NCBI RefSeq assembly: GCF_021869535.1
Contig: NW_026262581.1
Coordinates: 112,778,001-112,842,000 of the forward strand
Reading direction: 5' to 3'
Length of the DNA: 64,000 bases
Source: Mytilus californianus
Taxonomy: Eukaryota
The position numbers and the translations under genes are program-made. The notes beneath the pieces are model-generated. The model saw only the letters and a list, made by a program, of their open reading frames with translations. It did no database searches and was not told where the DNA came from. Of this stretch, positions 1,850 through 63,336 are shown one piece after another (position 1 is the stretch's first letter; the number at the start of each line of letters is the position of its first letter).

Positions 1850-2185
1850 AACCTTAATGAAGTTTAGCTTTTGTGTGGCTGAAGCTGTAATATTATTGGC
1901 ATGTTTGTTCCATTTAAGTTGGTTTGTATTGATATGCCAAGATGTTTTGTGGATGTTTCTTTTAGCAGTACATGTTGGACTTGTGTTGGGGAAGAGTCTG
2001 GTCAAAGTTTATTGGGTTTTTCTTAGTGATCTAGAAGGACTGAGCTCTTGTCTGTGTGCAACATGAGCCAGTCCTTCTCCCAATTTGGTGCTAACACGAT
2101 AGGACCAAAACTATTCCTTGAGGAACACCAGATTTCCAGATGTCACATTAATTTTGTCTGATTGTACACCATCACTGGGAATCAG
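1850..2185 (-). pseudogene. Decayed, internally deleted LINE RT fragment
   Basis: The minus strand reads DGVQSDKINVTSG..VPQG, jumps to WEKDWLM, then KHLGISIQTNL/KWNKHANNITASATQKLNFIK across frameshifts. These are homologous to the intact ORF at 3-1391. Confidence 0.7.
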
Positions 2186-3769
2186 GCATCAATAATCATA
2201 ATGACTTTTTAATAGTACGTGTGATACATGTGAGGCAATCTTCTATTTATTTGAAGGATTTCAATACCATAATTTAGTTTGGAGAGAATTCTTTCGCGAG
2301 GCACAGTAGTTACATCTGCCTCATATTATTAATCAAAAACATACTTCCATTCAATGTATTGATGCTCATAAAACTAGCCGGTATAATTTATAAGTTATTA
2401 TAAAGTGTGTTTAAAATTAATATAATTTTAAAATGACAATCTACCATCAGATTTGGCGCGTTCTTTCATTACCTCCCTTCCCAAATTTCCGGTTTACTCT
2501 CGGCTCATTTCGTACCAACATTTCGCCACTTACTTTTCTGAAATATATTTGTTTAAAGTGCAAGAATTAGGTTGGTGACATTATCTATTTGGTTACTTTA
2601 TCTGGGATATTAAGTAATTTGTCTACCAAGAATCAAATGTCATAAGCTCACTGATTAAATAATCTGATCAACACTTAGCCCATTAAGCTGTTAATATGTT
2701 TTTCTTCTCAGTCACCCAGTGTGTGTAAAAATTTATCATCAATCAAGTCAATGACATTAAATACTTTGCATACTTTGACTCAGAGATTAAGAATGGGAAT
2801 CCGACAATTGTGTTTTTGTTAATAATTTTTCATTGGATATGTAAGTCACATAACTTCTATTTCCTTTTAATATTTTTTTCATGTGATGGATCATGTTCAA
2901 TCCGGATCCATGAATAAAAAGAAGATAGATGGCATATTTATATCAAATGTTGTAGATCTGGTTGTTGACGAACAACTATGCAAATCTTTTGTTTCACGCT
3001 TTCTTTACAGGAAAGGGGAAATCTTTAAATTGGGAACAATTCCACTAAATATTCCTCCCGGACAAGATACTGACATCAATCATCTTTCTTTTTCGACCCT
3101 TTGAAGCTAATTACTTAATGATGATTTAAATATCACCAAACTAGCTTTATATTTCCGTCTACAAAAAAAAATACATCGGTGACTATTCCAGTATATATAG
3201 CTGCTAATCTCTTGCTGTGTTCGCCGTTACGTGGCCTCAACGTGGTATTCCCTTTTTGTGTTGGTTTAATCATCGGTTTGATTTCTATACAATGCTACAG
3301 TATCCTTAGATTGTGCACGGTTGAGTTATTTGATATTTAAGTCCACTTATAAAATAAACCGGCTGAGACTACTATAGTAGTTTCAGAAAAAAAAAGTTTG
3401 AAAGCAAAAGGCTCTCACCACAATATTTACGAAACTTTAACATGTTCAAATTTAAAATCCTTATAGGAGTATTTATTTCCGTTAAATGCTGATTTTTACA
3501 AATTTTGTTTTTGTTTTGCCTATTATCTATAAGCCTAGTATAGATAGGGACAAACTTTAAACGCAAATTTGTTCAGCTACACAAAATCTACAAATAGTTA
3601 AACACTGCCGAAATTGTCCGTCGACTCCCTATAGGAGTTATTGCCCTTACATGGAGATGTTTTACCCTTTTTGTCTTGGGCAAAAACTATGTATAGAAGA
3701 TACAGAGAAACTGTAAACAGCAAAAAAGATTTGCAAGACAAGATCTACAAATTGGTCAATTTAATTAAA

Positions 3770-4222
3770 ATATAGATCTCCGATTTCGTTATACATCGGG
3801 TATCCCAATCCGAAACGGCGGAGGAATCCAAATCACGAGGAGCAATTAATGAAAAGTTTGTAACGCTATGTAAGTAAAATCTGGATCCGATTCCCATGGA
3901 GGAATTGTGCTCCGTGGGAATCAGCTCCAGATTTTACCTACCCACCGTTACAATTTTCATTAATTGCTCCCTGGGATTCGGATCCCTTTGCGGATTTCGG
4001 ATCGGGATACCCGGTGTGGTTATGCTCATATCGACGAGTTGCTATGTAAGTAAAATCTGGATCCGATTCCCATGGAGGAATTGTGCTCCGTGGGAATCAG
4101 CTCCAGATTTTACCTACCCACCGTTACAATTTTCATTAATTGCTCCCTGGGATTCGGATCCCTTTGCGGATTTCGGATCGGGATACCCGGTGTGGTTATG
4201 CTCATATCGACGAGTTGCTATA
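3770..4222. repeat. Long foldback (about 250 bp hairpin) plus exact 176-bp tandem duplication
   Basis: Nested arms surround loop GAATTGTG (~3901-3908): GATTCCCATGGAG/CTCCGTGGGAATC, GTAAGTAAAATCTGGA/TCCAGATTTTACCTAC, and an outer ~75-bp diverged arm pair. 3865-4040 is repeated identically at 4041-4216. Confidence 0.85.
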
Positions 4223-4892
4223 CATGTATATCTAAATTTTAATCAGTTTTCAAATTAGTCAACAAAGAAGAAATTGTCATTAAATTTCATATAAGATTTA
4301 AATGGCCTTGAATGATGATTTTTACCTTTTTCAAGTAGTGCTGGATTATAGTCTAGTTTACTGTGTGGGAAAGTTGTCGTTGTCATGAGTAGATGCACAT
4401 AGATGCAAGGGAATGGCATTTTCATAAGAACTTGTCCTCACATTTTATTTCGAAATTCTCTAATTTAGCTCTCTTTCTAGTCATCAGTAGAATTCTTACT
4501 ATTATAGTGCTTTTGTGATGTAAAATCTTTACAAAACATGTGAATTTTGCATAATCTCAGGGGCGGATTTATATTTTTTCCTTCAAAATCCTCATCCGTA
4601 CCCGAAGCAGTAGCTTGATAAAAAGTTGCGTGACCTATAGTTTTTATCATATTTCGTAAAATACGATATAACTGCAAATTTTCGAAAAGTATAAACAAAT
4701 CTATAATTGGTGTTAATACTACCTGCCTTATGAATTAAACGCTCATATTATTTTTATCTTCCTAACATTATATTGCTAAGATACCTTCTATCCGCGTTTT
4801 GTATTAGGATAAACTAGGTCTTGCAGACATATGCAGTTTATGGAGTTAAGTTAAGAATAGTCCAGTCCAATCGATGTTCAACAATATTTAGA

Positions 4893-4934
4893 CTCTTTCT
4901 GAAATTTGTGTGTGGCTCTAAAAAGAGCCTTTTT
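4893..4934 (-). terminator. Histone-type 3' processing signal: stem-loop plus histone downstream element
   Basis: Minus strand AAAAA-GGCTCT-TTTT-AGAGCC-ACACA-CAAATTTC-AGAAAGAG. The stem-loop is at 4914-4929 and the HDE-like purine box at 4893-4900. Confidence 0.8.
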
Positions 4935-4969
4935 AATTATCACTGCATGGGACAATAAGTGTGCACTCA

Positions 4970-5248
4970 TCAACATGTATGCTGATAAATGCGATTTTTC
5001 AATTCTTCTGTTTCTTTTGCCTTTCTCAGGGCAAATTCGTAATAAACTTCACGGAGACCATCAGCGACAGCAATCCGAAGTCTTAGCGTGTATCGGAATG
5101 AACGGTTTCCTTCTTGTTTTGCTTTTGTGTATCTCTGATCAAGGTTGGAAAGTCGATGGTTAAGATGAACAATTTGCTGACAGGCTCTGCGAAAGTGGCG
5201 CTCGGTCACTATAAGGAGTTCTTTAACAGCAGTAGCTTCCATGGTCAT
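4970..5248 (-). CDS. Intronless orphan 92-aa protein, predicted helical hairpin
   Basis: ATG in good context (aaccATGaccATGg), TGA at 4970-4972 and helix-like amphipathic composition. A TATA/Inr lies upstream and a histone stem-loop 40 nt after the stop. I cannot assign a family. Confidence 0.7.
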   Translation of the reverse strand: MTMEATAVKELLIVTERHFRRACQQIVHLNHRLSNLDQRYTKAKQEGNRSFRYTLRLRIAVADGLREVYYEFALRKAKETEELKNRIYQHTC

Positions 5249-5290
5249 GGTTACAGTCTTCTACTATGTCGCTTAAGACATAAAATTATA

Positions 5291-5326
5291 GAATGAAATT
5301 GTCACAGAGAAACATTGTGTTTTATA
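5291..5326 (-). promoter_or_regulatory. TATA box and initiator for the 92-aa ORF
   Basis: Minus-strand TATAAAA at 5326-5320 and TCATTC at 5296-5291 (A at 5294). The first T of TATA is 32 nt upstream of the putative +1, and the 5'UTR is about 46 nt. Confidence 0.65.
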
Positions 5327-6107
5327 GTCAATTTTGATAAGAATCATCAAAGAAGAATTATTTTACCTTTGATTATGTTGAAAAATATTTAAGATATGCT
5401 TTTGTTCTTTCTTATTTCAATCCTCAGGAATGTTTGGGTAATTTTTTATCTTTGTAAAAAAAATCCCTATTATAATACTTAGCTACCTGTAAGCACATGG
5501 CTTCATTTTCACACCCTTTGATGTGTTTATACCTTAATTTGTTAATGATATTGGCTTCAATTCGACGCCGTCACAAATTATATTGCAATTGTTATATTGT
5601 AACATTTGAATATTGAGCTAAGAAATAACCCAAGTTCTCAAAAAAGTAAGAATTTAGAATTTTTCAATCAGGATTTAACTATGTTTAAAATTACCATGAT
5701 TACTCACGATCATAATAATAATAAACTTATCACGACAATCAATCCTATAAGATAACTTGCATTATGATCAAATTGATAATTAGAAACATATTTTGCTATC
5801 CAAATATGCTCAATAGCATGGTATAACCAAAATTATTTATTAATTGGTTTAAATTCACAAATTTCCTGTAAAATTATATGAAATTCATTAACTTGGCAGT
5901 TATGTTATGAAAAGTAATAAATGAATTATTTATAAACAGATCATTAAATTATGAATGCATAAAGATTGTCCAAAACCGATATTTTGGCAAGTTTTCAATA
6001 TCTATCCCCAAAAATGTAGAAAAGATCGTCGTAAACAGGCACAAAACCAAAATTCCGTTAAAAGTAAAGCTATGTGTTGTCTTTCGGATAAAAATTAGTT
6101 AATTATG

Positions 6108-6192
6108 CACAGGCACTTGTCTCTAAAAAAAAATGTCCAATATGTCTTAATATAAAACATATAGGAATTTTTTTCAGAGACAAGTGCCTGTG
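6108..6192. mobile_element. ~85-bp hairpin mini-MITE
   Basis: CACAGGCACTTGTCTCT ... AGAGACAAGTGCCTGTG followed by TA. One arm recurs at ~22934-22985. Confidence 0.6.
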
Positions 6193-6525
6193 TAATTATA
6201 GTAAGCGACGTCTTTCGATGCAAAATGTGACCGTGAAAAACATGTAAAAATTGCATAGTTTGTACTAAAATACTTCAACAGCAACGTCATGTAACATGCA
6301 GTGCTGAATAGCATTTCGAATTTATGGAAATATGTAAAATTGTTAACAAATATTTAATGTATGTGATCAGAGACATATGTATATATTTCTCTGATGTGAT
6401 ATATATAGGCTCTATTATTTTCAAATTCCAGTAAGATTTGACAACTTTTAGATTTTGATCCTGCGAGTGAAACAAAGTGGAAATTGGTCCTTCCTCTTTA
6501 TTTCCGAAAAGATAAGTACTATATA

Positions 6526-7507
6526 TGTAAGACTCAAATCGACGTCCGGTCTCTAATCGACGTCCGTTCCTCAAAACGACGTCCAAATCTGACGTCACAA
6601 TAATAGTCAATTTTATGCCCCTCTAATCGACGTCTTTTTTGTTGTTCTCAAATCGACGTCCAATTTTTGGCTTCTCTAATCGACGTCCGTTTTGTGGACT
6701 TATCGCAGTGAAATCACAACTTTATTAAAGGGTGGGTTGAACCTAAAACTTAAAAAGTTGTTGAAAAATATGAGTCCAAACATAATACTTTTCAAAAATT
6801 GTCCGAATGTTATTATTCTTTCTATTGTTTGAGTCTGTGTACTGCCCTCTAGATGCCTTTTGATTATCTTTGTTTTTGGGTTGTTGTCTCATTGTCGTAC
6901 AATGTATACCCACATGTCATTTATTTATATGAAAAAGAAAGGAAAGCGACAACGTAGGTCTAGAATATGAAAGTCTTTCTACAAAATATTAATATGCATG
7001 AACATGTAATAGTAATAGTAATAGTAATAGTAATAGTAATAGTAATAGTAATAGTAATAGTAATAGGATGTTGGTGATTGTCTTATTGTCATTTTCTGAT
7101 GTTTGTCCTTCAAGTTATATTTTGATAACAATACAAGAAAACAGTTATAGTTTCTGTAAGCTATTTCACAAAAAGACAAAACGATACAGATAATATAAAC
7201 AAACTAAGATCAATTTAAAAATAAATGATTCAATGAAATTCGACATCGTTATGAGAGTCTCCTCATCGATCGGACTTAGTTTTTGTGATTTATTACGTCA
7301 CATTGGACGTCAATTACAGGGTTAACACTGATTTGAGAACGTGACGTCAGATTTGGACGTTAAAATATTGGACACTAATTTGAGAACGTGCCGTCAGATT
7401 TGGACGTTAAAATATTGGACACTGATTTGAGAACGTGACGTCAGATTTGGAAGTCGATTTGAGGAACGGACGTAGATTAGAGACCGGACGTCGATCTGAG
7501 TCTAACA
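6526..7507. mobile_element. Non-autonomous DNA transposon with ~75-bp TIRs, TGT..ACA ends and TATA flanks (Ginger-like, inferred)
   Basis: TGTAAGACTCAAATCGACGTCCGGTCTCTAATC... matches the reverse complement of ...GATTAGAGACCGGACGTCGATCTGAGTCTAACA. TATA is present on both sides and there are many subterminal GACGTC motifs. Confidence 0.8.
7006..7066. repeat. (GTAATA)n microsatellite, about 10 copies
   Basis: Read directly; the source of the poly-Tyr pseudo-ORF at 6979-7179. Confidence 0.95.
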
Positions 7508-21000: not shown

Positions 21001-22058
21001 AATCGTGCAAACTTGCTTATACAAGTAAATATTACTCACATCTTAAATAAAAATGACTTGTATAAAAATGTTATCCCTGACTGACAGATGTGTAGTTAGT
21101 CTATGGTCTGCAAATTGTCAAAAAATATCATAAGGACTTATGAGCTACATGTAAGGTTCCTCAGCTACATTTTCAATTCAACATGCTTTCAAAAATTAAT
21201 TTGCGGATGTAAATAGTAAATAAGATTGTACAATGTATCTATAAAATAAACACACAATGGAAATTTTTGTCTGTTTCTTCAATAAATCAAGGCGAAAAAA
21301 ACTGTCAAAATAGATGCATCATGTTAGTATTTCAAACATAATTTTTGAAAAGATATTACAAAAATAAATCATTATTTCCAAATTTGGTAGTAATTAGTTC
21401 AACGAATGATTTTTGAGGTATCTTAATTATTTTGTCAAATCATTATTCTTACGAAGACCAAATCATAAAATCGCTCAGGACACAAAATCCAAAAAGGGAT
21501 TAGAATTACTGTAGACATACCTGAGGCTGAGGCAGGTGTTGGTACATTACTTTTGCACACTGCCTTATGTCCTGTTTTCCAGTCTGCTTCTTGATGTTCT
21601 TTACTACAGTATGTTGCACTCTGGCATCTTGCACATCTTTTCGACCCTCTAAGTCCGCACACTACACACAAATCCTGATAAAATTTTGCAGAGGGTCCAT
21701 CGGTCTCTTTCTTTGGTGGCTCTGGACTGTAAAAGTCATTGTTGCGAGGCAATTGGGATCTTAATGCACAAAAGTTTTCATTGTTATTCTTACTACAGCA
21801 TACGACATTTCTACAAACAAAAACAAACAACGCTCTGTGAAAAGCTTTCGGACTCTCTTCAAACGGACAGTACACTTGCATCAAAAATGATAGTATCTTT
21901 CCACATTTTGAACATTCAAGATCTTTGTTTGAAGGTATCGGTGAAAGAGATAGCCAAGCTGGTTTTCCTCCAACTTTACTTGGGAAATGAAAGCTACATA
22001 GCAAATGAGAGTCTGTTCTTTCTACAAAACCCAATTCCACGTTGTTGCTGTCCACCAT
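15047..22058 (-). CDS. PDCD2: Programmed cell death protein 2 (MYND finger, uS5 chaperone), 362 aa, 4 exons
   Basis: Exons 22058-21521, 17071-16797, 16067-15954 and 15208-15047, all GT-AG with consistent phases 1,0,0 (1089 nt). Motifs SKVGGKPAWL, MQVYCP, MYND CVVC..CARC..YCSKEHQ..W..GHK..C, QVLRY, FEFQIMPQLL and DWGTLCVYTC. Confidence 0.95.
16402..16591. mobile_element. TA-flanked ~190-bp MITE (family of 54989-55185), diverged
   Basis: TA-CTGCAAAGCAACTATTTTT ... AAAATAAATTGGTTTACAG-TA. Confidence 0.55.
17836..17995. mobile_element. 160-bp MITE with CAG..CTG ends (hAT-like)
   Basis: CAGTGGCGGATCCAG / CTAAATCCGCCTCTG, flanked by GTCCG and GTCTG (possible 5-bp TSD). End fragments occur at ~4558, ~9675 and ~12120. 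Confidence 0.7.
18236..18308. repeat. 18-bp minisatellite, about 4 copies
   Basis: GAGTACTCAAATTGCACC units. Confidence 0.9.
18600..19872. repeat. ~173-bp satellite array, about 7.5 units, in PDCD2 intron 1
   Basis: The anchor GTAATGC occurs at 18654, 18829, 19002, 19174, 19347, 19515, 19688 and 19861 (spacings 175,173,172,173,168,173,173). Confidence 0.95.
19878..20275 (+). pseudogene. Penelope-like retroelement RT fragment with one frameshift
   Basis: Hand translation gives FLLDNIFVCYGDSVYLQVIGIPMGTYCAPLIVDLFLCCYE, a frameshift near 20095, then FRYLDDILALNNDDF..IYPSELTLN..FLDLDI. These are PLE RT motifs. The ORF track missed it. Confidence 0.85.
20300..20848 (-). mobile_element. HINE/Pearl-like element (family F) with (GTCC/GTCT)n and ~185-bp internal repeats
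   Basis: Terminal palindrome TATACGTCCCGT-AA-ACGGGCATATA at ~20817-20842, (GGAC/AGAC)n at 20760-20805 and repeated AAATCCCCCTTTTTGTAATGAATAAAACCCC. Confidence 0.7.
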
Positions 22059-58500: not shown

Positions 58501-61500
58501 ACCAAATCTGCTGACACTGACAGGTTTCCTACAACTTGTGGCTAACTTTTTCTTATTAACATATTATGACTGCAGTTTTTATGCTGCTAGTAAAGACCAT
58601 CCTGAGAGTCCTCCTGTTCCAAACTGGGTGTGGTTAGTGTGTGGATTGAATATGTTTATTTCACATACATTAGGTAATACTTTATACTTAAGGAAAATAT
58701 TGTTTTGTTCATATAATCTATTTTTATACACCGCAAAAAATTTGTGTTCGTATAATGCTATCATGTCGGCTGCGAAGGCACATTTGGTTTCCGAACAATG
58801 ACTTTAGTTTAAGTGAATGGATCTCTATGAAATTTTACCAGAAGGTTCAATATCACAAAGAGAAGGCTAGGATTGAGTTTGGGGGTAATTGCCCCAAACA
58901 TTCAGGAATTAGGGGCAAAAAAGGGGCCAAAAACAAGCATTTTTCTAGTTTCCAGACAATAACTGGTGTTAAATTTTATGGAACTCTCTGAAATTGTACA
59001 TTTTTCCTGAAAAGAAAATAATCTTCAAAATTTCAAAAAATTGGGGGGGGGGGGGGGGGGGATTTTTTTTTCAAATATTTTTTGGGGCTTCATATGTTTT
59101 TCTTGAAAAATTTTGAAATTTCAAATTTTTTTCCATTTTTAGTGGGGGGATATTTTGGGGGGGGGGGGGGATTTTTTTTTTCATAATTTTTTGGTTTTTT
59201 TTTTACATTGATTATTTCTGATTTATATATAAAAGCAACAAATACTGATATGGCAGGAGATACACACCAAACAGGGTGTGAAAACTATTATATACAGTCC
59301 GCCAAAAGTTAAGCACCACCTATCTTTGTTGCATCGAAATTTTTTTCATTTAAAAAAAACCAGTTAACCCTCGAAAAAGAGAAAATATTCATGTAGCAAT
59401 TTTGCTAACATATGCCATAAACATACCATCAACTTAAGTTTGGTCACTGATACAGATTTTATGCATTTGAATTTTGCGTTCATAGAAATAGTGAAAATTA
59501 CACAAACCAGAAACAGAATTTAAGTTTTACTTTGATTTTATTTTTTTACAACAATTAATCACCCAAATTCATTAAAAGTCTCTACAAATAATCTTTGGTA
59601 TGTTCGGCAAATTTAATTTCAATATTTAAGTCAATAGGATGTGTAACCACCTCTCTTCCGGTACAGTTCCATAACACGGCGTCTCATACTCTGTACAAGC
59701 CTGCTGAACTTCAGTTGAGCAAATTTATTCCTTTCATCAACAATTGTCCCTCTTAAATCGCCAAGATTTTGCAAAGGTGGATCTCTGCAATTGAGATTTC
59801 TGCCAATGGCATCCCAGACATGTTCGATATGGTTCAGGTCTGGAGACATGGAAGGCCAAAAGATAGTGTCAATGGCTTCTTGATCTTTGTAATCGGTTAC
59901 AATCCTTGCCTTGTGTGATCTAGCGTTGTCGTCCATGTACGAGAATCTTGACGCAAGTTGGGGATTCTCAAAATGAGGGACTACAATGTTTCTAAGCACC
60001 AAATCCCTGTATGTCTGTCTGTTCATGTTACCCTGCAAAATATGCATACCCAGCTTACAACAGTATGAAAAGAAACCCCATACTGTAACACCACCACCAA
60101 CGATTGCTGTCGTTGGGCAATTGTTGTTTTGGTGATAGGCAGTTTTATTTCCCCGCCAAACTCCTATTTTGCCGTCTATTGGTCGCACCAGAAACCAACT
60201 CTCATCTGACCAATGAATATTTTGCCAGGTTCTCATGTTCCATCGTCGATGGTCATTTGCACTTTGAAACCTGAATATACGGTGCCTGTCTTTTAGGGCA
60301 AGTCTTTTGACAACACGACGTGCTCTTATGTAGCCTCTATGAAGTCGACGGACCAATGTTCAAACACTAACACGACCACCTGGAGGTCAGTGGTGTCTAA
60401 GCTATGGGGCAGGAGTAAATGGGTTGGCTTTAGCACGACCAATAAGTAGTCTGTCATCACAATAGGTAGTTAAACAGGGTCTTCCGGACCTTGGTCTATC
60501 ATTTACAGTTCCTGTGTCAATATGACGTTGTAAAAATCTGACAATGACGGTGCGATTAACATTGAAATGGTTACCAATGCTCCTAGTGCTCCTACCGGCA
60601 TTTGACATGTCAATTGCTTGTCAACGTCCAGTCACAGATAACTTACCGCTTGCCATATTTCACAGTGACTTGGTGAAAGTCAAATTTAACCTGTACGCGG
60701 GACAGAAGGAAGATGATTTAAAGGCATCAAAACAGTGTATTTGTAAAAGTGCAGATGACCTTTAATAAAAGGTTGCTTGGCGGGTATATCGGAGTTTAAT
60801 TTTTTTGGTCGTAATGAATTTTCTTAGTGAATGCTATAGGCAATTCATAACACCAAACATAAATATTTTTTTCGCAATAGTTAAAAAAATATTGACAGTT
60901 ATATTTAGGTGGTGCTTAACTTTTGGCAGACTGTATATATAACAGATTAACTAAGTACTGTGCAACAGGACAGTATTGCGCAATAGCAAGAAATCTTCAA
61001 TTGAAAATAAATACAAATCTTTTAACCAACTTCAATGGGATTAAATAAAGTCTTTAATTTTGGGGGTTCTAACCTTGTATTACTATTTTGAATATATATT
61101 GGGCCCCATTTTTAAATTGGTCTACATTGAGGTCCAAAGGGTTCAAAATTAAACTTTGTTTGATTTCATCAAAAACTGAGTTATTGCGGCTCTATGATAT
61201 GCTGAACATTTAGATTTTTTATTTTGAGCCCTGTTTTCAAATTAGTCCGTATTAAGGTTTGAAGGGTCCAAAATTAAACTTTGTTTGATTCCAACTAAAA
61301 TTAAATTTTTGATGTTTTTTTATATGCTGAATCTAACCATGTTGTTAGATTTTGGATATCAGACCATACTAGGTAAATTAAATGTCCCATTTCAAATTTT
61401 TAAGATCTTTGTGTCAGAAACCTTAATTATGTCAAAAATTTGATCACAATCCAAATTCAGACAGTATCAAGCTTGAATATTGTGTCCAAACTTGCCCCAA

Positions 61501-63336
61501 CTGCTCAGGGTTCAACCTCTGCGGCCCTATCAGGCTGCGCTTGGGCGAAGCAATTTATTTGTACATGAAATTGTATAAGTTGTTGACATCTGTATCTGTA
61601 GAAAGCATTACAGTATTTCTTCTTGTAATTATATGTTAATGTCTCCTCCCTGAAAAGTCACTGAATGACAGAAACAAAATCTGACATGTTGAACTAAGAT
61701 TGCCGCATTTGGCCAGGTTGCACATAGTGTTAAGACAACAAAAGTGCTATGAAGTATTTTTCTTTCTCCAAAAAAAGATTATAAATTATAGTATAGAAAA
61801 AAATATATATTTTTTTACAGATGGGACAGATGGAAAGCAAGCCAGAAGAACCAAAACAAGTAGCCCATTGGGTGAACTTTTTGACCATGGTTTAGATAGC
61901 TGGGTAACATTATTTATGCCAGTGGCGATGTACTCTGTGTATGGTCGTGGAGAGAGTGGTGTCAATGTATTCAGAGTGTTCTTAATAACTGTTGGAGTAC
62001 AGTTTTGTTTCATGCTATCACATTGGGAGAAATACATTACAAATGTTTTGTTCCTGCCTTGGGGTTACGATTTAAGTCAGCTTGTGAGTATATACCTAAG
62101 TAAAGTTCTGTATTGTTTAAAGAATTTTGATTAGGTTGATAAAATTATGTAACCATTAGCCAGTTTAAGAAGGATAAGGTGAATTGGAAGCCCATGTGTT
62201 TTTGTACCCCTTCCTAACTGTTGAAGTTGGGGGCTTTATTGCAATCACCTTGTAGGTCCGTTCGTCCAATGAATATTTTGGTCACATTTTTCTGAGAAAC
62301 TACTGAACAGAATGACTTCATATTTGGTAAGCAGCTTGACAGTGATGAATTGTAAAATGGGAGTAGTTATTGGATCTGCCAGCTACCTTCTTCCTGTTCG
62401 CCAATACTATGAATTTTATAATATTGGTGTGCTTAGCAGAACAAGGCATGTATTCATGTTTGAGCAAGAATAACTTTTAAAAAATGGGGGAAAAGTATTT
62501 ATAATTAAACTGGTAAAGAAATTTTGGTGAATAATTGTAATAGGATAAATGTTTATGATTTTTGTATGTATTTCTGAATGACATTCATGTCTTTATATAA
62601 TTATAGGTTTTTATTCTATTTAAAGGTATACTTGATATGCTAAGGTATCAGTTTATGTTGCATTCCATTATGCTGTTTTTTTAATTGACAATTGATATTT
62701 AGAAGTGGTTTCAGTTTCTTAATCTTAATATATTATTGATAATAGAATTATTGATGTTTTTTTTCAGGGTTTGACATTCATATATCTGTTAACTTCCATG
62801 GGTGGACATGATATGTGGAAATTTAAAGTACCTATAGTTGATATGTTTATGTCAGAAGTATTTGAAATTATATGTTATGGTATGTACTGATTGGTTCATA
62901 ATTTATGTAGTTATATAACAAGTCATAACAGGTAGGAATTTGGGAATATAATATAGTCTAGTGATCATGTAGTCAAGTAATTTTAATTTAGTTTTTTAAG
63001 GATATAAATATATTTTAGAATATTTAGAATTATTTCTTACGCAAAAACGGGAATTGTAATTTTACTTTGTTGTTTTGTTTAAACTTTTTTTCGCAGAGTG
63101 AAAGTCACTTCATTTTTGTTGATTTTAATTTTGAAAACTTCTGTTAGAAAACACAAGCTTTGAGATAGAAATTCTGAATACTAATTTTTAACCTTATTTA
63201 AATTTTGTGATTATTTCAATAAGACAGCAACCCAACAACACAATAAATTAGAAAATGTTGTTTAATTTGTTATATTGTTTATTTCAGTTGGATTTTTTGG
63301 ATTAACCATGCCATTTACTCTGTGGAATATTTATGA
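49541..63336 (+). CDS. SELENOI: Ethanolaminephosphotransferase 1 (SELENOI/EPT1), first 6 coding exons; 3' part lies beyond the window
   Basis: Exons 49541-49603, 55811-55879, 58481-58673, 61821-62083, 62768-62879 and 63288-63336 (GT-AG, phases consistent). CDP-alcohol phosphotransferase motif [26 protein letters not shown], plus EPT1-type SHWEKY and LPWGYD. Confidence 0.9.
49680..50120. repeat. ~120-bp direct repeat pair about 318 bp apart
   Basis: GCAAAAGATAACGGTAAAACGCAACAAAACATAATG...GATACAAACTATTA at ~49685 and ~50003. Confidence 0.9.
50172..50372. repeat. 73-bp tandem repeat, about 2.7 copies
   Basis: TACTCTATTACCCTTCA at 50172, 50245 and 50318. Confidence 0.9.
52129..53100 (+). mobile_element. 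Family B HINE-like copy with ~157-bp internal tandem units
   Basis: Both termini are present. TGGATCT.T..GAAATT units occur at ~52240, 52400, 52560 and 52715. Confidence 0.88.
54440..54847 (+). mobile_element. 5'-truncated family B copy
   Basis: Matches 52680-53100, including the 3' subTIR and hairpin. Confidence 0.85.
54989..55185. mobile_element. 197-bp MITE with TA TSD (Tc1/mariner-type ends)
   Basis: TA-CTGTAAATCAACTTATTTTCGCG ... CGCGAAAATTAGTTGGTTTACAG-TA. Confidence 0.8.
55372..55697. mobile_element. ~320-bp MITE, PIF/Harbinger-like
   Basis: Perfect inverted core TTGTCACTATCAAAGTT / AACTTTGATAGTGACAA, with TAA on the left and GGCC-TTA on the right. Confidence 0.65.
56800..57993 (+). 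mobile_element. HINE-like family C with ~147-bp tandem array (7 units)
   Basis: 5' palindrome GTCGAGCCTGCGAC-TTTT-GTCGCAGAAAGCTCGAC, (GGC)n, TGACCTTGACCTCATTT-type units every ~147 bp and a 3' AGGCGAGACA..GTGTGCACTCTTGTT. Confidence 0.85.
58017..58298. repeat. 45-46-bp minisatellite, 6 units
   Basis: CAG(A/G)TCTAG at 58017, 58062, 58108, 58154, 58199 and 58249. Confidence 0.93.
58725..61559 (+). mobile_element. Family B copy split by a Tc1 insertion
   Basis: 5' TATACACCGCAAAAAATTTGTG at 58725. Eroded ~130-bp units lie at 61050-61350 and the 3' hairpin at ~61520-61559. Confidence 0.8.
59295..60933 (-). mobile_element. Full-length Tc1-family transposon (DD34E) with disrupted transposase
   Basis: 28-bp TIRs CAGTCC/TGCCAAAAGTTAAGCACCACCTA (27/28 identical) and TA TSDs at 59293-94 and 60934-35. 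WSDES, MDDN-34 aa-E (SPDLNHIE) and HTH region DRPRSGRP are present, with stops 5' of 60356. Confidence 0.95.

Follow-up and report, generated by a model that had tools for sequence, protein, structure and literature searches.

A mussel gene of an unnamed helical-hairpin family with a predicted histone-type mRNA 3' end

To our knowledge, the histone stem-loop pathway is presented in textbooks as exclusive to replication-dependent histone mRNAs. Its stem-loop-binding protein, SLBP, recognises the two flanks of the stem, A-rich on the 5' side and AC-rich on the 3' side, as well as a G at stem position 2 and a U at loop positions 1 and 3, and the U7-pairing downstream element is a purine-rich sequence some 10-15 nt past the cleavage site that is complementary to the 5' end of U7 small nuclear RNA (snRNA). 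Replication-dependent histone mRNAs are described as the sole cellular mRNAs known to be non-polyadenylated (PMC4604434), and those of bivalves carry the stem-loop together with purine-rich elements (PMC6210712). Here we analyse a 64,000-nt stretch of Mytilus californianus DNA (assembly GCF_021869535.1, contig NW_026262581.1, positions 112,778,001 to 112,842,000 of the forward strand; hereafter the window), in which a gene for a 92-residue protein of non-histone fold is followed by a signal of this type. On balance, we take the locus for a genuine protein-coding gene, single-copy and intronless, which belongs to an unnamed family of hairpin proteins in lophotrochozoans and whose mRNA would acquire its 3' end by the histone route. 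What we obtained by computation are its open reading frame (ORF), selection, family and fold, and the conservation of its promoter, stem-loop and downstream element. The transcription unit consists of the following features, of which the TATA box, leader, upstream ORF, 3' untranslated region (UTR) and hexamer were read from the sequence and the coding sequence was taken from a list of ORFs.

5320-5326, minus strand: TATA box TATAAAA, 32 nt 5' of the predicted start (-32)
5291-5296, minus strand: initiator-like TCATTC, with the A at 5294 as the predicted transcription start
5249-5294, minus strand: predicted 46-nt 5' leader
5273-5281, minus strand: two-codon upstream ORF (ATG TCT TAA) within the leader
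4970-5248, minus strand: intronless coding sequence, 92 residues, including the stop codon at 4970-4972
4930-4969, minus strand: 3' UTR, 40 nt from stop to stem
about 4935-4940, minus strand: ATTAAA hexamer
4930-4934, minus strand: A-rich 5' flank AAAAA of the stem-loop, the AAA being invariant in 31 related elements
4914-4929, minus strand: stem-loop GGCUCU-UUUU-AGAGCC, 16 nt, with a 6-bp stem and a 4-nt loop, inside the RF00032 match
4909-4913, minus strand: 3' flank ACACA, with cleavage predicted at its end by analogy with ACCCA in histone pre-mRNA
4890-4900, minus strand: purine-rich core AGAAAGAGUCU, resembling a histone downstream element, as a putative U7 snRNA pairing site

The Rfam model Histone3 (RF00032) matches 4890-4934 on the minus strand with 37.2 bits and an E-value of 3e-07, above the curated gathering score of 34 for a histone-type stem-loop. 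It is the sole Rfam match in the window, and the stem-loop pattern itself occurs there once, against 0.02 expected by chance. The cassette reads AAAAA-GGCTCT-TTTT-AGAGCC-ACACA at 4934-4909 of the minus strand, followed by AGAAAGAGTCT at 4900-4890, and it presents the bases contacted by SLBP, namely the A-rich 5' flank, the G at stem position 2, the U at loop positions 1 and 3 and the AC-rich 3' flank. Cleavage is predicted, by analogy with histone pre-mRNAs, just after the stem at the end of ACACA; AGAAAGAG, at 4893-4900, starts 9 nt past this predicted cut and is kept as GAAAGA or AAAAGA in relatives, its pairing with U7 being putative. Neither a histone gene nor a further stem-loop is present in the window.

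Upstream of this signal, the ORF runs without interruption, and the entire unit takes up about 440 bp, an intronless, compact arrangement behind a TATA promoter as in a replication-dependent histone gene. An earlier note on this DNA had likened the layout to that of a histone gene, placing TATAAAA at -32, the TCATTC, a leader of about 46 nt, an intronless frame and a histone-like 3' end; these placements are accurate to the base, the likeness of layout holds, and the 3' end is real, as judged from its Rfam score and its uniqueness in the window. The first ATG lies at 5248 and a second one, in the context ACCATGG, at 5242; it is the latter that is conserved as a start in relatives, and it would give a product of 90 residues. 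The same compact layout is found in relatives. A TATA-like box and TCATTC at a spacing of 31-33 nt recur in the Mytilus galloprovincialis paralogue (L001) and in locus L002, and a TATA-like box stands 60-95 nt 5' of the ATG in 20 of the 27 related loci examined. TATA box and initiator as well as stem-loop and downstream element are intact in the window and conserved with L001, and the coding sequences of all related genes read are uninterrupted. The window gene is unannotated in every collection searched.

Is the histone-type 3' end a peculiarity of this one copy? We took the DNA of relatives from assemblies and metagenomes and read 40-odd of them, most of which have the stem-loop: it lies on the coding strand, 16-135 nt past the stop, in 34 related genes, or 35 with the window gene. 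The carriers are distributed as follows.

Mytilus-type copies: L001-L007
Further loci: L010, L012, L013; L039
Clade of 13 loci: L015, L017, L018, L021, L024, L026, L028, L031-L034, L036, L038
Clade of 7 loci: L016, L019, L022, L023, L025, L027, L029
Mya arenaria: two head-to-head paralogues (CP111022.1), 35.1 and 31.6 bits

The related elements score 19-40 bits with RF00032, all on the strand of the gene and in the same position, and the model finds no match on the opposite strand of these approximately 120 kb of loci. In 31 aligned elements the AAA of the 5' flank, the GG at the base of the stem, the first and third loop bases and the A that follows the stem are invariant, and a GAAAGA/AAAAGA core is conserved 12-16 nt farther on. 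These invariant positions are the bases that SLBP is known to read, and the purine core looks like a U7-pairing downstream element. Pairing of the stem is kept in 92% of cells over 28 distinct related elements, with pair 4 being U-A, C-G or, in one clade, C.A. Homology between paralogous loci stops directly after the purine core. A maximum-likelihood tree built from 42 domains has genes with the stem-loop in each of its major clades, and since at least three state changes are needed on this tree, early presence with later losses is the simpler history. As far as the sequences tell, the histone-type 3' end would thus be a family trait in most sampled copies, including all named bivalves except oysters.

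The family itself is large, and the label "orphan", which the earlier note had attached to the protein, has to be given up. A word-based search found three relatives at 60-63% identity (in MAFFT alignments), one of them a hypothetical protein of M. galloprovincialis, and a search of 1.84 billion cluster representatives, using a profile that includes the window protein, returned 798 at E ≤ 1e-3, of which 317 reach E ≤ 1e-10; as generic coiled coils may stand among the weakest of the 798, 317 is the safer count. Molluscs, annelids and nemerteans have members of the family. A lack of homologues, which would have spoken against the note's reading, is therefore not what the searches gave. What the members have in common is a domain of about 80 residues; its consensus is FRRACxQIVxLN...RY..A...N.RSFRYxLRLRLAVxEGVRNMYYxYA and its core motif F-R-R-A-C-x-Q-I-V ... 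R-S-F-R-Y-S-L-R-L-R-L-A-V-x-E-G-x-R-N-x-Y-Y-x-Y-A. The window protein has both conserved motifs of the family, F-R-x-A-C-x-Q-I-V and R-S-F-R-Y-x-L-R-L-R. Y40, R52 and Y53 are invariant, and F19, C23, N30, R39, R56, L57, G64 and R66 nearly so. The window protein is 33-64% identical to 47 members, no protein in the searched collections being more than 64% identical to it, and it falls into a clade with the Mytilus-type copies (support 100/99). If the window derives from the California mussel, the 63%-identical M. galloprovincialis protein would be a paralogue and the true orthologue unannotated. Pfam scans of 48 and a further 8 members found no family covering the shared domain, the SWIM finger of one Ostrea edulis member being the sole hit. 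Members from named organisms, annotated only as hypothetical, are these.

Bivalves: M. galloprovincialis hypothetical protein on UYJE01007034.1; Magallana gigas K1PRP6; Mya arenaria WAR19793.1; Ostrea edulis XP_048777949.2
Gastropods: Littorina saxatilis XP_070194631.1; Nucella lapillus KAL8578164.1
Annelid: Lamellibrachia satsuma LSAT2_008627
Nemertean: Tubulanus polymorphus XP_074640406.1

About 40% of the top 150 members are short and basic like the window protein, and a similar share has acidic tails; many relatives are longer than the window protein, their acidic tails having a median Asp plus Glu content of 32%. The name "nucleolar transcription factor 1-B-like" of the Littorina protein probably reflects such a tail. 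A motif of the type V-x-I-V-S-x-S-D-S-E follows the domain in 22 of 141 members, where 3.4 are expected from shuffled tails, and by its sequence resembles a phospho-regulated SUMO-interaction motif; the window protein lacks the acidic, SUMO-interaction-like tail carried by some of its relatives.

Against the M. galloprovincialis homologue, the rate of nonsynonymous substitution (dN) is 0.28 and that of synonymous substitution (dS) is saturated at about 2.0, giving a dN/dS of 0.14; the unsaturated pair L002/L003 gives 0.29. The neutral ratio that would have counted against the earlier note is thus not observed, and these alignments indicate that the ORF is under purifying selection. All 40 columns that are invariant among the four closest homologues (40/40) are kept in the window protein. 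DNA depth is flat and single-copy, 14-25x over 4224-6086, and the DNA runs show two coding differences, at 5108 and 5029, which by our own reading of the codons we take to be synonymous and a conservative L74M, respectively.

Structurally, the window protein is predicted to be a plain hairpin. AlphaFold2, given a four-sequence alignment, places helices at residues 3-46 and 49-91, folded back on each other, with a mean predicted local distance difference test score (pLDDT) of 94.5. The two long helices, the richness in Arg and Lys and the lack of a histone fold that had been read from the sequence earlier are hence borne out, the protein having an isoelectric point (pI) of 9.8 with 12 Arg and 6 Lys. 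It has no Pfam match at E ≤ 10. Sequence searches of the PDB, with the single sequence and with a profile, gave weak coiled-coil noise only (E ≥ 0.046). The check by AlphaFold and Foldseek that the note had suggested returned, from the PDB, a flat list of generic hairpins with template-modelling (TM) scores of 0.74-0.89, E-values all above 0.2 and identities of 4-20%. An exhaustive VIA-align comparison with 48,161 chains likewise gave generic long hairpins at Z 10-12 and a root-mean-square deviation of 1-3 Å, where for long helices a Z below about 13 denotes a common arrangement and is no evidence of kinship. The matches comprise the N-terminal dimerisation hairpins of the chromatin readers ING3, ING4 and ING5, p85 iSH2, α1-α2 of ESCRT-III, prefoldin and ROP, all of them long, antiparallel hairpins of two helices and about 90 residues; judged from the model, the likeness of the window protein to all of these is a shape analogy only.

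What can be proposed from this about the production and role of the protein? RNA polymerase II would start about 30 nt past the TATA box, and the pre-mRNA would fold the 16-nt stem-loop, to which SLBP would bind. The U7 small nuclear ribonucleoprotein would pair with the GAAAGAG element, and a cut a few bases past the stem would leave a non-polyadenylated mRNA of about 385 nt. Should this SLBP/U7 route hold, production of the protein would coincide with that of histones during DNA replication. The protein would most likely serve as a nuclear adaptor that pairs via its antiparallel hairpin, the Arg/Tyr-rich tip contacting nucleic acid or an acidic partner. Transcription, processing by SLBP and U7, coupling to S phase and the nuclear role are what we infer. 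A place of action in the nucleus is probable because the hairpin tip is basic and Arg/Tyr-rich, because paralogues have acidic and SUMO-interaction-like tails and because co-regulation with histones is presumed. Most likely, the family consists of small nuclear proteins whose mRNAs are made via the histone SLBP/U7 pathway. Mytilid mussels and myid clams diverged roughly 500 million years ago, and we suggest, if tentatively and with somewhat less than even confidence, that this non-histone family has been part of the SLBP/U7 regulon since before that divergence and provides the first cellular non-histone mRNAs to end in a histone stem-loop.

Several observations weigh against this proposal. Most of the related stem-loops score under the Rfam gathering threshold, and stem pair 4 is a C.A mismatch in all 13 loci of one clade (13 distinct sequences), elements which may be either tolerated by SLBP or weakened. 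Covariation in the stem is weak, no better than in shuffles, as is expected because the stem is nearly invariant and read by protein. The stem-loop is absent from the copies read of oyster, Lamellibrachia, Tubulanus and Littorina, and from L008/L009, L020 and L030. Many of the metagenome loci are near-copies of one another, so that the 34 genes are not independent and the independent evidence amounts to about six deep clades and two named bivalve genera. In the window itself, the ATTAAA just 5' of the stem would also permit a polyadenylated form. None of the indexed RNA runs holds the gene sequence, and one RNA-seq run with the same species label, of which about 6% was read and whose library type is unknown, has zero reads on the gene; three other sequencing runs behave as genomic DNA. 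As a non-polyadenylated, replication-coupled mRNA would be scarce in most libraries, these zero reads neither support nor refute expression, and poly(A) selection could have removed a stem-loop-ended mRNA from the run. Finally, the case for a nuclear role is indirect, a part in chromatin or replication being deduced from the histone-type mRNA end, the basic hairpin and the tails of paralogues.

The same gene frame could have other origins. It might be inherited from a histone gene, with the protein a very divergent histone or histone-fold protein; the TATA box, the lack of an intron, the stem-loop, the downstream element and the length of about 440 bp all match, and the product is small and basic. 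However, neither a core histone nor an H1 globular domain is seen by Pfam, AlphaFold2 or structure searches: Pfam gives no histone match for the window protein (E ≤ 10) and no histone or histone fold among 48 family members (E ≤ 0.01), two helices of 43-44 residues stand against the short-long-short three-helix histone fold, there is no histone among the generic long hairpins matched by Foldseek in the PDB or by VIA-align, and the other reading frames of the coding sequence translate into nothing histone-like. We therefore give this descent hardly any credence. The window copy might alternatively be silent or decaying, being intact through recent duplication, or keeping the stem-loop as a relic while ATTAAA is used in its place. 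Zero reads in the partly read RNA run, the lack of a protein more than 64% identical and of any annotation, the hexamer at about 4940-4935 and the clear loss of the stem-loop in some relatives fit such a fate. Divergence from the nearest known relative is old, however, by the saturated dS of about 2, and dN/dS is nevertheless 0.14 with 40/40 invariant columns kept; the promoter elements and the 3' signals are intact and conserved with L001, the differences in the DNA runs come to one synonymous change (5108) and the conservative L74M (5029), and the RNA sample was small and of unknown library type. Silence or decay thus appears improbable.

It is likewise unlikely, in our estimate, that a mobile element carries the gene as cargo or has left it behind as a remnant, with a stem-loop borrowed for expression in dividing or germ-line cells and a family enlarged by transposition. 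A very large, many-copied family (798 representatives), units of about 790 bp that recur almost unchanged on several contigs of a single metagenome, tandem or inverted copies in L024, L013/L014 and Mya, the fusion of one Ostrea edulis member to a SWIM zinc finger, a domain often seen in proteins derived from transposases, and the position of the window copy among repeats and fragments of reverse transcriptase and DDE transposase would all be in keeping with it. Yet the window copy has single-copy depth, as opposed to 100-6,500x in the flanking repeats; these two repeats, at 3865-4216 and 6108-6192, are not related to each other, and the gene is not bounded by terminal repeats, inverted or direct. 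Homology to paralogous loci is confined to 4879-5248, that is, to the coding sequence and the 3' signal, none of the loci read links the family to a transposase, integrase or capsid domain, and purifying selection extends across deep paralogues. The nemertean and gastropod copies within an ankyrin and CAP-Gly gene suggest an old host locus. The viral or transposon origin that the earlier note had considered consequently finds no support for the window copy, whose depth, lack of terminal repeats and homology ending with the transcription unit led us to reject it as transposable-element cargo.

Within the hairpin family, several loci show individual features. The two Mya arenaria paralogues (L053) lie at 557-961 and 3796-4217, head to head with about 2.8 kb between them, and both have a stem-loop of their own; in the public annotation, the plus-strand copy is fused with an exon far upstream into a 165-aa model, which is probably a mis-annotated intronless gene. 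L013 has a second, near-identical stem-loop with downstream element (648-693, 903-948), 255 nt past the first and with no ORF before it, L014 has a stem-loop upstream of the gene at 57-101, and L024 has two gene copies (320-621 and 1818-2044), which suggests tandem arrays or duplicated 3' ends in some species. The family copy L008 has at least two occurrences with identical protein and no stem-loop, and its closest relative L013 has one; the genes called by the source on the L008 contig (557-1786, 2424-2990) contain many stop codons under table 11. In the 13-locus clade that includes L015, the stem-loop reads GGCCCU-UUUC-AGAGCC, with loop position 2 varying between U, C and G. The 401-aa isoform of the Ostrea edulis protein XP_048777949.2 (P0051) combines the SWIM zinc finger at 100-117, a lysine-rich linker and the hairpin domain at 307-380, the only domain fusion seen in the family. 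In Tubulanus polymorphus (L052, OZ123227.1) and Littorina saxatilis (L054, CM074563.1), the family gene sits inside a gene with ankyrin repeats and CAP-Gly, on the opposite strand in one case and on that of the enclosing gene in the other; both copies lack the stem-loop. This nesting suggests a neighbourhood conserved across two phyla, as expected of an old, fixed host locus. Between the window and the loci of relatives, no common neighbour gene was found.

The surroundings of the window gene are rich in repeats. At 3865-4216 lies an exact tandem dimer of a 176-nt unit, rich in internal inverted repeats, in which the depth of the DNA runs rises to about 780 over a baseline near 20. Within the examined stretch, RNA reads fall on this dimer only and show opposite-strand joints; the dimer may be a transcribed, hairpin-forming satellite or miniature inverted-repeat transposable element (MITE). 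The stretch 6108-6192 forms a small palindrome, its 25-nt arms being 96% complementary and separated by 35 nt; with a DNA depth of 2,000-6,500 it has a very high copy number, and it looks like a MITE. Farther on, 66-nt inverted repeats (94% complementary) at 6533-6598 and 7435-7500 flank about 840 bp, with 47-nt tandem repeats at 7325-7465; the stretch 6533-7500 looks like a MITE-like element with subterminal repeats. The window further contains these coding fragments.

60-1391: reverse transcriptase, RVT_1, E-value 1.5e-31
21435-22058: MYND zinc-finger ORF
59631-60356: DDE_3 transposase fragment
61700-62134: CDP-alcohol phosphatidyltransferase exon

If mRNAs of this family do end in the stem-loop, the SLBP/U7 regulon would be wider than thought in a major animal clade. 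A search rule as simple as a small intronless ORF followed by a stem-loop would then find new S-phase proteins, and an unnamed family with hundreds of members would gain its first functional handle, production together with histones. This would point to a class of small chromatin proteins in lophotrochozoans that are coupled to replication and have so far escaped recognition, some having tails that bind SUMO. Genome annotation misses short genes like this one, the window copy being unannotated throughout. In the literature that could be searched, we found no report of a conserved non-histone gene family with a histone stem-loop, and nothing relevant on the oyster accession K1PRP6.

Set beside replication-dependent histone genes, the mussel gene presents the same TATA-driven, compact, intronless unit. 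It has the same stem-loop of 6 bp and 4 nt, here 40 nt past the stop, with the same AAA flank, GG base and U at loop positions 1 and 3, followed at the usual distance by a purine-rich element as a putative U7 site. Histone genes are arranged in tandem or in divergent pairs, as are some of the family relatives. Where the mussel gene departs from them is in its product, which has neither a histone fold nor an H1 globular domain.

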